From: Oikopleura dioica
Taxonomy: Eukaryota; Animalia; Chordata
Length of the DNA: 64,000 bases
NCBI GenBank assembly: GCA_907165135.1
Contig: OU015566.1
Span: 13,206,001-13,270,000 of the forward strand
Reading direction: 5' to 3'
Shown: positions 24,185 through 26,802 of the stretch, in pieces
How positions within the stretch are numbered: the stretch's first letter is position 1
Layout: every line of letters begins with the position of its first letter
Made by a program: the position numbers and the translations under genes
The notes under the pieces: model-generated
Seen by the model: the letters and a program-made list of their open reading frames with translations, nothing else
What the model was told of the DNA's origin: nothing
The model's database searches: none

Positions 24185-26802
24185 ATGCGTTTTACTAGAA
24201 CTCTGAGATCCTCGTTTCGGGCCGCTTTGGCAAAGCAAATCGAGTTCTCTGGGCCACTTACTGTCGCTCAATTTATGCAACAATCCTCAACAAATCCCAT
24301 GCAAGGATATTATACTAATAAAGATCCTATAACGGTAAGGGTCCTGAATTTCCCTTTGATGCTCTAAAAATCTTCGAATCAACTTGACGGACCCTTAAAA
24401 TTGGCGGACGGTGACTTCATAACTTCCCCTGAAGTGCACCAAATGTTTGGCGAGCTAATCGGAGCGTGGATTCTCCAAGAATGGACAATTGCTGGAAAGC
24501 CTGAATCTTTTGAATATCTTGAACTCGGGCCTGGTAGAGGCACACTCGCTAAAGATGCTCTTAATGCTATTCAAACTCTGCTAGATAAACTGAGTGAAAA
24601 CAAGGAGGACTCTCAGAAGACTCGGATAAATGTCCGTTTTGTAGAAGTTTCTCCTGTTTTGTCGAAGAAGCAAGCAGAAGTTTTAGGTAAGAATTTTCCC
24701 TAAGGAAGATTTGTGAGCCTGTTTTCCAAGATATTAGAGCGGTTTTTATATGAAATTATATCAAGAAAGACACATATTTTGATTTTTCGGATTTTATTTA
24801 TACTGATTTTGACTGAAAACACACACACAACTGTAGAACTGACTTTGCTTTTTAGAAGAGAGTGAAAATATTAACAAATATAAAAGGGAATATAAACTAA
24901 ATGTTTAGTAATAGAATCCCTGTCGGGGCTGTTGGTAATAAAAGCCTTGCTTAGGCTGCTGGTAGTAGAATCCTTGCTTGGGCTGTTGGTAGTAGAATCC
25001 CTGTCGTGGCTGCTGGTAGTAGAAGCCCTGGTCATAGTAGAATCCCTGCTTTGGTTGTTGGTAGTAGAAACCCTGTCGTGGCTGCTGGTAGTAGAAGCCC
25101 TGGTCATAGTAGAATCCCTGCTTTGGTTGTTGGTAGTAGAAACCCTGTCGTGGCTGTTGGTAGTAGAAACCCTGCTTGGGCTGCTGGTAGTAGAAGCCGT
25201 CGTAGTAGAATCCTTGTCGTGGCTGCTGGTAGTAAAAACCCATTTTTATATTATTGTTTTGCTCGATTTTCTCTCGATGAAAAACGAAGGGGAGAGCCCA
25301 GTATTTATGAGAGCTTTCGTTTCCGTTTTACCTAATTAAAATTGCCTTCCTGTCTAATTATTATCTGGTTTTATATAATTAGACTATAAATGAAGGGATT
25401 TAGGGCGTCTAAAAATGCTTTCTGACGGAATCACTTACATATTATTTCTAGTTCGAATCTCTAAAGAACCATAAGAAGCTTCTTTTGAACTTTGAATAGA
25501 TATCATGCTAGTTGTAGGCTCATTAGTCTGGAGGTGTTCAGAACGAGTACTAGCTTGTAGATATCTTTCTTGCTAGAGGCAACAGTGAAGAGATGTTCTA
25601 TACCTAGGCCGAAGTAGTCGGAAAGGAACGCCTGAGAAGAGAGGCTTTCCCGGCCATCGGGTTAAGCAATTTTTGTACGCTCCAACAGGAGCATGCGATG
25701 AATAAATTTCAGCTTACAGAGCCATTCAGGTCTTACGATTTCCGAAGTATCAGAAGTAGAAGGCCAAGGATGTTACATGAAAGCCACGAACGGTTCAAAT
25801 CTTAACGCCGAGTGGTATCGAAACTTTGAAAGCTTGCCTGAATCTGATGATATTTGCTTCGCCATATGTAATGAGTTCTTTGATGCGCTGCCGATTCACC
25901 AGTTTGATTTCAACGAGAACACCCGCCAGTGGAGAGAAGTGATGGTGGACGCCGACCCTGTTGAAAAAGAAAAGCTTCGTTTTGTCACTGCTCCTGGCGA
26001 CACCCCTGCAGCTAAGGCACTCCTCCCCATGTTCGACAATGAAGATCTTGAGGGAAAAAGACGGGTAGAAGTGTCCCCTAGTTCATTAATCCACTGCCAG
26101 TGGCTTTGCGAAAGGATAATGAAACAAGGTGGTTCATCTTTAATAATCGACTACGGACACGAAGGACAAAAAGAAGACACTCTCCGTGGTTTCAAAAATC
26201 ATCAGCTCGTCGATGTGCTGGAAAATCCTGGAGACGTGGATATAACTGCCGATGTCAATTTTTCCCACTTGAGATCTGTCGCTGAAGCCGTCGGGGTGGA
26301 TGCAAGTGAAAGTATCACACAAGATGTGTTTTTGAAAAATATGGGGATTGATACAAGGTAAAATTTTCTAGAACAATTTGTTTATTTTAAAAATAAAATC
26401 AAAGAATTTTTTTTATTATCCCGGGTTGGGAATTAAAAAAGTAAATTTCGAATAAATTCAAAATTTCACAAAAACAAATTGTTCTAGAAAATAATTTAAT
26501 GTCTAAATAACTCAATTACCCCAAAATAGGGCAATTCATGAAGGCTATCCTTTTAGAGTCTAAAATTTAGACTCTTGATGCTTATGCGAGCGACAATTTC
26601 CGGCCCCGCAAGAAAAAATCTCTCTGAATGCTTCGATTATCTAATGAAAGAAATGGGCCCTAAATTCCGAGTTATGGCGGTTTCTCATCCCGCTCGGCAA
26701 AAATCTGGAGAAGAGATGCCTGGATTCTATGCTCTGCAACAAGATCATTCTGCATTTATGCGCGCGCCACCAAAAATTGATATTGAAGGCGACTTGAAAT
26801 AA
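24185..26802 (+). CDS. NDUFAF7: Mitochondrial protein arginine methyltransferase NDUFAF7/MidA
   Basis: GPLTVAQFMQ...GYY, GDFITSPEVHQMFGELIG, ELGPGRGTL, ICNEFFDALPIHQF, WREVMVD, LIIDYG, TLRGFKNH, PGDVDITADVNF and MGPKFRVM. Confidence 0.92.
24905..25240. repeat. 27-bp-unit minisatellite with 15/18-bp truncated units
   Basis: Repeated GCTG(C/T)TGGTAGTAGAA(T/A/G)CC units are directly visible. Confidence 0.95.
24905..25243 (-). CDS. Nested intronless 112-aa Tyr/Gln/Phe-rich repeat protein (GFYYQQP[RK]Q)n
   Basis: ATG in an AAAAATG context and TAA straight after the last GFYY. The 14 GFYY units show synonymous codon variation. There is an ATAAATA motif about 60 nt upstream and an AATAAA about 105 nt downstream on the minus strand. 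Confidence 0.7.
   Translation of the reverse strand: MGFYYQQPRQGFYYDGFYYQQPKQGFYYQQPRQGFYYQQPKQGFYYDQGFYYQQPRQGFYYQQPKQGFYYDQGFYYQQPRQGFYYQQPKQGFYYQQPKQGFYYQQPRQGFYY
26367..26488. mobile_element. About 120-bp palindromic MITE-like element, copy 2 (last NDUFAF7 intron)
   Basis: TCTAGAACAATTTGTT...AACAAATTGTTCTAGA ends. The core TTATTATCCCGGGTTGGGAATT is inverted relative to copy 1. Confidence 0.6.

Follow-up and report, generated by a model that had tools for sequence, protein, structure and literature searches.

The window, a 64,000-nt stretch of Oikopleura dioica DNA, contains a complete intronless transcription unit on the minus strand at 24783-25330, which lies antisense within an intron of NDUFAF7. 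The unit comprises a TATA-type promoter, a putative short 5'UTR, an ORF of 112 codons, a 122-nt 3'UTR and an AATAAA signal (Table 1). It has the properties of an independent nested intronic gene: signals of its own, conservation footprints and metatranscriptome coverage that are confined to the unit, the RNA contigs being unstranded. That this is a genuine protein-coding antisense gene, transcribed independently of NDUFAF7, is well supported. The locus illustrates well how annotation can miss a real gene: it is short, consists purely of repeats and sits antisense in an intron, yet it is conserved.

Table 1. Features of the nested gene and its NDUFAF7 host (positions in the window)
Feature	Position	Strand	Remarks
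NDUFAF7 exon upstream of host intron	24401..24686	plus	PF02636, E 1.6e-15, profile positions 1-73
NDUFAF7 host intron, GT...AG	24687-25729	plus	1,043 nt; outside the nested unit unalignable with L009
NDUFAF7 exon downstream of host intron	25730..26361	plus	PF02636, E 2.2e-38, profile positions 81-245
Upstream block AATAATTAGACAGGAAG	25346..25362	minus	conserved with orthologue; approximate distal edge of conserved promoter
Upstream motif ACGGAAAC, core CGGAAA	25319..25326	minus	about 10 nt upstream of TATA-like box
TATA-like box CATAAATA	25302..25309	minus	core ATAA invariant in orthologue L009 and paralogues L007 and L011
Short 5'UTR (putative)	25244..25280	minus	start placed about 25-30 nt below TATA-like box
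CDS of nested gene	24905..25243	minus	ATG 25243-25241, 112 codons, TAA 24907-24905
Young 72-nt (24-codon) higher-order repeat within CDS	24963..25174		2.9 copies, 95% identity
3'UTR, stop codon to end of metatranscriptome contig	24783..24904	minus	contig X1 collinear over 24783-25099
AATAAA poly(A) signal	24793..24798	minus	conserved in L006, L008, L009 and L007

The ORF starts in the context AAAAATG and ends with TAA right after the last GFYY. The protein, with the N-terminus MGFYYQQPRQ..., consists of 14 units, each of which carries the aromatic triplet FYY within a GFYY motif. Ten units had nine residues, two had six, one had five and the terminal one four, and aromatics recur every 5-9 residues along the chain. 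The composition was 28.6% Q, 25% Y, 12.5% F, 12.5% G, 8.9% P, 4.5% K, 4.5% R and 2.7% D with a single M and no other residue, cysteine included. The intronic minus-strand ORF of 112 codons with its 14 GFYY motifs, its Tyr and Phe content and its restriction to nine kinds of residue (G, F, Y, Q, P, K, R, D and M) had all been described in the first-pass annotation, and the recount agreed in each respect. The calculated mass was 14.4 kDa with a pI of 9.35. A GRAVY of -1.62 and the lack of a hydrophobic segment agree with the earlier statement that the protein has no signal peptide. A degenerate pattern of the unit matched ten times here and not once elsewhere in the 64 kb, the chance expectation being 0.01. 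N-myristoylation of Gly2 was rejected, because the pattern PROSITE PS00008 permits neither Phe at position 3 nor Gln at position 6.

The exons on both sides of the host intron were identified as NDUFAF7 by their Methyltransf_28 matches. The TATA-like motif and the AATAAA that were said to flank the ORF are both present and both conserved in related loci. Furthermore, CGGAAA was invariant in 4 of 4 aligned upstream regions, and a block CATCGAGA...ATCGAGCAAA in the region of the putative 5'UTR was conserved in the orthologous locus L009. At the other end of the unit, the cross-locus alignment decayed directly past AATAAA. The 3'UTR was 92-95% identical to those of the orthologues compared with 77-80% for the host exon. 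A snoRNA or another structured RNA behind this conservation was rejected; Rfam gave sub-threshold matches only, which lay elsewhere in the region and reached 18 and 16 bits where 47 and 44 are required, and the z-score of folding was 0.21.

Like nested opposite-strand genes of other compact animal genomes, the gene has its own promoter and poly(A) signal wholly within the host intron, which is unusually long for this genome. Compared with such genes there is nothing unusual in kind. What stands out is that nesting was kept across lineages and that the 3'UTR of the guest is better conserved than a coding exon of the host.

Related metagenome loci were retrieved with a single-protein query. Three contigs (L006, L008 and L009) carried the same repeat-only gene in the same intron of NDUFAF7, antisense and between or next to NDUFAF7 exons, which had 68-90% amino-acid identity to those of the window and differed by 20-23% in nucleotides. 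The ORFs of the three had 9-11 or more units, always in frame, began with MGFYY and ended with ...QQPRQGFYY-stop. Repeat number varied, with 10 units in the complete ORF of L009 and 14 in the window, and no frame-breaking change of repeat number was seen among the three orthologues. Two paralogues, L010 and L011, possess a 48-nt GT-AG intron with the frame kept, and the repeat-only form was present across all loci from L006 to L011. Thus the search for orthologues and paralogues that had been suggested before was productive, with variable repeat number and an intact frame. Lineages that have diverged thus keep the gene nested in the same way.

The repeat can be read through in several other frames as well, hence an open frame by itself proves nothing. 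Evidence at the level of codon positions was drawn from the units of the window only, with all units included. Among the ten units of nine residues, seven columns were variable outside the K/R codon, and all of them were third codon positions. If seven variable columns were placed at random among 24, of which 8 are third positions, all seven would fall on third positions with a probability of about 2e-5 by our own arithmetic. Arginine was always encoded by CGA and lysine always by AAG, i.e. a K/R swap is a difference at all three bases. The first-pass annotation had reported that the units differ mainly at synonymous positions plus a multi-base R/K swap. This was borne out with the exception of one detail, as GGG had been listed among the glycine codons, while GGT, GGA and GGC are used and GGG is not. 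A test of codon positions with units pooled across loci was discarded as circular, since those units had been chosen by their protein pattern. Between the orthologues and the window 22-33 codon differences were synonymous and 7-10 non-synonymous. The earlier claim of selection on the protein, as opposed to a neutral minisatellite, is upheld by the synonymous excess, the third-position variation and the frame kept in three orthologues. The comparisons show that purifying selection acts on the protein encoded by the nested gene.

Expression was assessed from assembled metatranscriptome contigs, which are unstranded, together with a handful of reads. A contig of an oligo-dT metatranscriptome (X1) was 98.7% identical to the unit over its collinear part and ended about 10 nt downstream of AATAAA. 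The nested unit was covered, with zero depth on the host exons and on the remainder of the intron. The shares of sequence words detected in X1 and X2 were 0.48 and 0.33 for the 571-nt unit and 0.12 and 0.08 for a stretch of 2.1 kb. Because the absolute number of words was the same for both lengths, all words of X1 and X2 lie in the nested unit. Two further data sets, X32 and X33, also contained the unit. The nested gene is present in plankton metatranscriptomes where the host exons went undetected. In oligo-dT runs of the species itself (X6-X8) there were almost no reads at the locus, host exons included, probably as a consequence of strain divergence. A few reads of X6 fell on the 3'UTR, and others came from a paralogue with a different 3'UTR. 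With regard to the transcript check proposed earlier, the oligo-dT contigs cover the unit and not the host exons. Read from these unstranded oligo-dT contigs, the nested unit appears to be transcribed and polyadenylated.

About 50 unnamed relatives were found in Tara metatranscriptomes and marine metagenomes, 40 of them by a word-based search and further GFYY-bearing proteins by an exhaustive search. All begin with MGFYY. In phmmer comparisons of the window protein with the 40 relatives E ranged from 6.5e-17 to 1e-3, and the columns G, F, Y and Y were invariant or nearly so. We define the MGFYY family by an MGFYY start that is directly followed by tandem units of GFYY and 0-7 polar residues, an architecture which the window protein shares. 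Most relatives carry in addition a C-terminal orphan helical domain (type A of about 200 aa or type B of about 90 aa) or a Lys-rich tail. Paralogues have units of 5, 8 or 9 residues, some with added domains and some without. A C-terminal domain or Lys-rich tail was absent from the whole window, where tblastn with all family proteins gave matches at 24900-25250 only. The window protein is thus a repeat-only member of a family in which the array otherwise precedes an orphan helical domain or a Lys-rich tail. The family is one of marine plankton, probably of larvaceans. Its modular architecture, the resemblance to OCRE domains described below and the conserved nesting had been overlooked in the earlier reading.

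Searches of Pfam, NCBIfam and PDB sequences with the window protein returned nothing significant. The exact window protein was absent when 15 billion sequences were searched, and none of the relatives carries a name; the exact sequence is present in the ESM Atlas, without a model. A feature search of the ESM Atlas with the window protein gave unnamed or unrelated repeat clusters only (0.87 or less, within the chance range), and one with the type A C-terminal domain gave matches at chance level only (0.80). The two strongest matches of the exhaustive search (E 1e-40, 2,382 aa, and 8e-33, 1,277 aa) were set aside as compositional because they lack the GFYY motif and are only 30% identical; other long matches of which the matched part was inspected carry different Q/Y/P repeats. 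Literature searches for GFYY-type repeats or tyrosine-rich Oikopleura proteins yielded nothing relevant. The description of the protein as undescribed accordingly stands and extends to the family.

With moderate confidence we favor the joint explanation of a real gene and a basic product that would self-associate inside the cell as a multivalent aromatic scaffold. Because the protein has no signal peptide it would stay inside the cell. In this reading the FYY triplets would serve as aromatic stickers, and hydration as well as cation-pi and Tyr-Pro contacts would come from the Gln/Pro/Lys-Arg spacers. Stickers and spacers together would therefore cause self-association of the window protein to a condensate, a gel or a beta-rich polymer, and domain-bearing paralogues may co-assemble via their GFYY arrays. 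The window protein shows the compositional bias of the prion-like, aromatic-sticker class, i.e. it is rich in Q, G, Y and P with regular aromatics and predicted disorder. AlphaFold2 gave a mean pLDDT of 46.4, with 85 of the 112 residues under 50, and no secondary structure, a low pLDDT being weak evidence of disorder in a repeat with a shallow alignment; the full-length relative P0090 had a pLDDT of 37.

Examples of prion-like aromatic-sticker sequences are the FUS-type [G/S]Y[G/S] regions and the nonapeptide repeats PQGGYQQYN of yeast Sup35. Prion-like domains share with the window protein the richness in Q, G, Y and P, periodic aromatics, polar spacers, predicted disorder and the absence of a signal peptide, and the Sup35-type repeats also share the period of nine residues. 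On the other hand, the window protein has about three times their aromatic content and includes Phe, its units each carry Lys or Arg and render it basic, no functional domain is attached and no homology was detected. Aromatic residues account for 37.5% of it, the period is perfectly regular and each unit has one basic residue, which makes it an extreme natural case of stickers and spacers. High glycine-tyrosine keratin-associated proteins are likewise small, aromatic-rich and devoid of a signal peptide, and they form an intracellular matrix. Yet they are dominated by Gly, contain Cys and belong to vertebrate skin appendages, whereas the window protein is dominated by Gln and free of Cys and, with no Pfam match, shows no homology to them. 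Those of vertebrate hair are mentioned in PMC8409303.

The array is OCRE-like in its sequence pattern and thus may alternatively form beta-hairpin meanders that bind Pro-rich partners. In such a folded adaptor of the OCRE type the exposed Tyr faces would mainly bind proline-rich partners in place of self-assembly, which we regard as rather unlikely. Similarly doubtful is the corollary that the partners would be e.g. Sm-tail-like motifs and that the repeat-only copy would be a competitor or a multivalent clamp. OCRE domains (PF17780; RBM5 and RBM10; PDB 5mf9 and 2mxw) and the GFYY array both are short tandem repeats of about eight residues, in which D/N/Q and then a polar or Pro turn come after an aromatic triplet (G-x-Y-Y-D/N...). 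Octamers that bear such triplets are the defining feature of OCRE, and their exposed Tyr bind Pro-rich motifs (PMC5127646). The paralogue P0005, which has octamer units, reached 44.2 bits against OCRE, above the gathering threshold of 24.7 bits, and aligned with the OCRE domain of RBM10 (E 0.009). P0003, P0014 and P0041 scored just under the threshold with 22-23 bits, and the best two PDB matches of the family profile were the OCRE domains of RBM5 and RBM10 (E 0.03-0.07). The window protein itself, however, scored 10.2 bits with an E of 0.81. OCRE is one capped globular domain of 55 residues, in which five octamers form six antiparallel strands in a compact twisted sheet; it has N- and C-terminal extensions or caps and sits inside large RNA-binding proteins (PMC5127646). 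The window protein, on the contrary, has 14 units of 9, 6 or 5 residues that make up the entire protein, no caps and no confident fold, and AlphaFold predicted no strands, although a model of such low confidence speaks neither for nor against the OCRE fold. Moreover, the likeness could be due to convergence of low-complexity repeats. We conclude that the GFYY repeats weakly resemble OCRE octamers in sequence. The GFYY family would connect the octamer motif of OCRE with repeat arrays that are open-ended.

Extracellular or cross-linked material such as house, egg coat or adhesive is an improbable use of the protein; it would involve export by a non-classical route and hardening through dityrosine/DOPA bonds or Gln-Lys bonds made by transglutaminase. 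A Tyr content of 25% alongside Gln and Lys in the units would suit it and resembles the composition of Tyr/Lys-rich mussel foot proteins and Tyr-rich trematode eggshell proteins, and the nested gene appears to be highly expressed compared with its host. Yet no signal peptide, hydrophobic segment or Cys was found in the window protein or in the approximately 50 relatives examined, family members bear helical domains and Lys-rich tails of intracellular appearance, and there was no Pfam match to any matrix family. Because a signal peptide is lacking, the role in house or egg coat suggested in the first-pass annotation is disfavored.

A transcript without function as a protein, either the decaying remnant of a domain-bearing copy or a minisatellite that is open only through its stop-free repeat, would fit the other open frames, the C-terminal domain missing from the window and the young 72-nt duplication inside the array, yet is highly implausible in view of a repeat-only architecture, start, last unit and stop that are identical in three orthologues with host exons 20-23% different, synonymous changes far in excess of non-synonymous ones, array variation at third codon positions only, a frame never broken by changes in repeat number and a conserved promoter and 3'UTR.

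It is tentatively conceivable that the GFYY array is a new lineage-specific polymerization module, either an open-ended beta-meander derived from OCRE or a condensate sticker, for an intracellular material of larvaceans. The repeat-only proteins would be the bulk scaffold and the members with orphan helical domains or Lys-rich tails its clients, with control of place or time by the very highly conserved 3'UTR, e.g. in the germ line or the embryo. For larvacean biology the data flag an abundant unnamed family, the cell type and role of which could quickly be learned from existing single-cell data. The variants in repeat number together with the paralogues with units of 5, 8 and 9 residues would provide a useful natural model for the effect of aromatic valence and spacing on assembly.

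Minus-strand translation within the NDUFAF7 intron yielded the frame described in the first-pass annotation, with an AAAAATG start, 112 codons made up entirely of repeat, a TAA stop and 14 GFYY motifs (see table). Of the motifs, ten belong to nine-residue GFYYQQP(K/R)Q units, two to GFYYDQ and one to GFYYD, and the last is a bare GFYY. The composition of 25% Tyr, 12.5% Phe, 28.6% Gln, 12.5% Gly, 8.9% Pro, 4.5% Lys, 4.5% Arg, 2.7% Asp and one Met agreed with the Tyr and Phe contents and the nine-residue alphabet claimed earlier. Aromatic residues account for a fraction of 0.375 of the predicted protein, which has a mass of 14.4 kDa, a pI of 9.35 and a GRAVY of -1.62. 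Tandem Repeats Finder detected a 27-nt period in the array, and a degenerate pattern of the DNA unit scanned over the whole window matched ten times, always in the nested ORF, while 0.01 matches were expected. The plus-strand ORFs on either side are two pieces of one Methyltransf_28/NDUFAF7 domain (profile positions 1-73, E 1.6e-15; positions 81-245, E 2.2e-38); the claimed intronic location as well as the flanking TATA-like motif and AATAAA were confirmed. Because the upstream NDUFAF7 exons are separated by an apparent gap of only a few tens of bases (24367-24401), the 1,043-nt host intron is a length outlier, for which the nested gene appears to account.

Features of the nested gene, its host intron and related loci
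Feature	Position	Strand	Detail
NDUFAF7 host intron	24687-25729	plus	GT...AG
AATAAA	24793-24798	minus	
Conserved 3'UTR	24793-24904; L006:297-405; L008:235-342; L009:1482-1587	minus (window)	
Nested gene coding sequence	24905-25243	minus	AAAAATG, 112 codons, TAA
Young 72-nt (24-codon) higher-order repeat	24963-25174		within coding sequence; 2.9 copies, 95% identity (Tandem Repeats Finder)
TATA-like motif	25302-25309	minus	CATAAATA
ATAA core and upstream CGGAAA	25302-25326	minus	spacing ~10 nt
Intron inside Gly codon of one GFYY unit	L010:238-285; L011:1361-1407		47-48 nt, GT-AG; splicing restores frame
Architecture: repeat-only			window, L006-L011
Architecture: GFYY array + type-B helical domain			~90 aa; e.g. 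P0006; array and domain in separate exons in L001
Architecture: GFYY array + type-A helical domain + Lys-rich tail			~200 aa; P0090
Architecture: two GFYY exons, second acidic	L005:278-1121		exon 1 basic/neutral GFYY-NQPK-type units; ~285-nt intron; exon 2 acidic GFYY-D/E units, Lys-rich end KKKSKKAKSKSRKPRRQ; own TATAAAA and AATAAA

Since several other frames are likewise open across the repeat, the open frame alone is no evidence for a gene. Among the ten nonamer units, leaving aside the K/R codon, seven of the eight third-codon columns vary and all 16 first and second positions are constant; by our own arithmetic the chance of all seven variable columns falling on third positions is about 2e-5. 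Arg is invariably encoded by CGA and Lys by AAG. Of the four Gly codons listed in the first-pass annotation, GGG does not occur.

Six related loci were retrieved from JGI metagenome contigs. In three of them (L006, L008 and L009) opposite-strand NDUFAF7 exons adjoin the GFYY ORF, with both flanking exons present in L009. Because these exons show 68-90% amino-acid and 77-80% nucleotide identity to those of the window, we regard the three as orthologous loci of diverged lineages with conserved nesting. All three ORFs are in frame, begin with MGFYY wherever the start is present and end in QQPRQGFYY-stop, while the number of units varies (10 in L009, which is complete with 85 aa; at least 11 in L006; at least 9 in L008). 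In aligned codons the window and the orthologues differ by 22-33 synonymous versus 7-10 non-synonymous changes, the latter mostly K/R, Q/N or D. Together with the third-position variation of the array this bears out the claim of selection on the protein rather than a neutral minisatellite, and the suggested search for orthologues and paralogues revealed no frame break in the orthologues. In the other loci (L007, L010 and L011) the gene consists of repeats only and no NDUFAF7 exon was detected within the contig; we take these genes to be paralogues. No intron interrupts the window gene or its orthologues, in contrast to L010 and L011.

Alignment of the window region with L009 gave identities of 74-86% for the host exons, 66-94% for the nested coding sequence, 83-94% for the 3'UTR and 62-74% for the promoter region, and mostly gaps in the rest of the intron (25400-25730 and 24700-24790). 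Up to the AATAAA the three orthologues show 92-95% identity in the 3'UTR, compared with only 77-80% for the NDUFAF7 coding exon of the same lineages, and the alignment decays right after the hexamer. The 3'UTR of the paralogue L007 still has 78% in common with that of the window. This 3'UTR matches nothing in Rfam and its fold is unremarkable (z 0.21); its high identity suggests linear regulatory elements, e.g. for mRNA localisation or translational control. The ATAA core and the CGGAAA upstream of it are invariant in L009 and in the paralogues L007 and L011; CGGAAA may be a promoter element common to the family.

Of the words sampled from the 571-nt nested unit, fractions of 0.48 and 0.33 were present in two oligo-dT plankton metatranscriptomes, X1 and X2, compared with only 0.12 and 0.08 for a 2.1-kb stretch including the host exons. 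The absolute word numbers were equal on both stretches (~26 and ~18), so all words lie within the nested unit. Two further runs of the same study contained 0.17 and 0.15 of the unit's words. A contig from X1 is collinear with window 24783-25099 with four differences and ends 10 nt beyond the AATAAA; depth on the host exons and the remaining intron was zero in this comparison. X6, an oligo-dT RNA run labelled with the species, gave a few reads on the window 3'UTR. Four other X6 reads passed from a GFYY unit through the stop into a 3'UTR unlike that of the window (loose end at 24990; region 24400-25900) and appear to stem from an expressed paralogue outside the window. The species runs barely matched even the host exons, probably due to strain divergence, and therefore yielded no expression level, stage or strand. 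The oligo-dT matches indicate that the unit is transcribed; RNA strand, cap site and poly(A) tail were not seen directly. Third-position variation, in-frame orthologues, conserved signals and metatranscriptome matches support the hidden nested gene proposed earlier, and we are confident that the locus is a real, independently transcribed protein-coding gene.

With a word-based search we retrieved 40 related proteins (E 6.5e-17 to 1e-3), each of them from a Tara Oceans metatranscriptome assembly or an ENA metagenome contig; all are unnamed, and NCBI and UniRef contributed none. Full-text literature searches yielded nothing on the repeat strings or on tyrosine-rich Oikopleura proteins, in line with the claim of an undescribed protein. 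The exact window protein is absent from a 15-billion-sequence collection and is present letter for letter, without a model, in the ESM Atlas. An exhaustive representative search gave 51 matches, of which the GFYY-bearing ones that were read are small (197-310 aa). The two strongest, both long, lack the GFYY motif at only 30% identity and were treated as compositional; the matched part of other long ones, where read, carries different Q/Y/P repeats. MGFYY stands at the start or after a few residues in every relative. Many from Tara assemblies (P0003, P0005, P0008, P0010, P0014, P0016 and others) have MG plus 3-12 residues ahead of it. This constant MG may come from in-frame reading of the terminal ATGGG of a template-switch cDNA adaptor; if so, the 5'UTRs would be only ~10-35 nt long and the MGFYY methionine would be the true start.

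The array is a portable N-terminal module on differing C-terminal domains, which argues that its function is a generic one in assembly or targeting. The C-terminal domains had no match in Pfam, NCBIfam, PDB or Atlas, AlphaFold rendered one such relative all-helical at an unreliable pLDDT of 37, and the window contains no coding sequence for such a domain. Judged by sequence, the only known family that the array resembles is OCRE (PF17780). OCRE is defined by octamer repeats bearing aromatic triplets, and that of RBM5 forms a six-stranded sheet with exposed tyrosines that bind Pro-rich motifs (PMC5127646). The paralogue P0005, built of octamer units, passed the Pfam OCRE threshold (44.2 vs 24.7 bits) and aligned with the OCRE domain of RBM10 (E 0.009), and the best PDB matches of the family profile were the OCRE domains of RBM5 and RBM10 (E 0.03-0.07). 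The window protein itself scored 10.2 bits against the threshold of 24.7 and, on the tests applied, does not appear to belong to OCRE. Its likeness to prion domains, keratin-associated proteins and matrix proteins is one of design only, with no homology. We regard it as an OCRE-like aromatic repeat protein that stands alone, with an open-ended array, within an unnamed lineage-specific family; the evidence for a new family of extreme composition and for its unusually conserved 3'UTR is solid.

A structural or self-assembly role, as predicted from sequence, is plausible. The window protein is hydrophilic and basic, has no Cys and no transmembrane segment and, as claimed before, no signal peptide; AlphaFold gave no secondary structure (pLDDT 46). 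A role of Tyr-Pro contacts in driving condensates has been discussed (PMC8409303). We tentatively favor an intracellular multivalent scaffold, in which FYY triplets would act as stickers and the Gln/Pro/Lys-Arg spacers would provide Tyr-Pro and cation-pi contacts; the protein would associate with itself, and the paralogues bearing C-terminal domains could assemble together with it. An adaptor with an OCRE-like fold that binds Pro-rich partners, as the P0005 matches might propose, is unlikely. An exported, cross-linked material for house or egg coat, as envisaged in the first-pass annotation, is still less probable given the lack of an export signal. A non-functional remnant or minisatellite is contradicted by third-position variation, in-frame orthologues and conserved signals and is very improbable.

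The window allele has 14 units compared with 10 in L009, and the X1 contig has a joint within the array that goes back 111. Like the 72-nt higher-order repeat, these observations fit repeat-number differences or assembly collapse.
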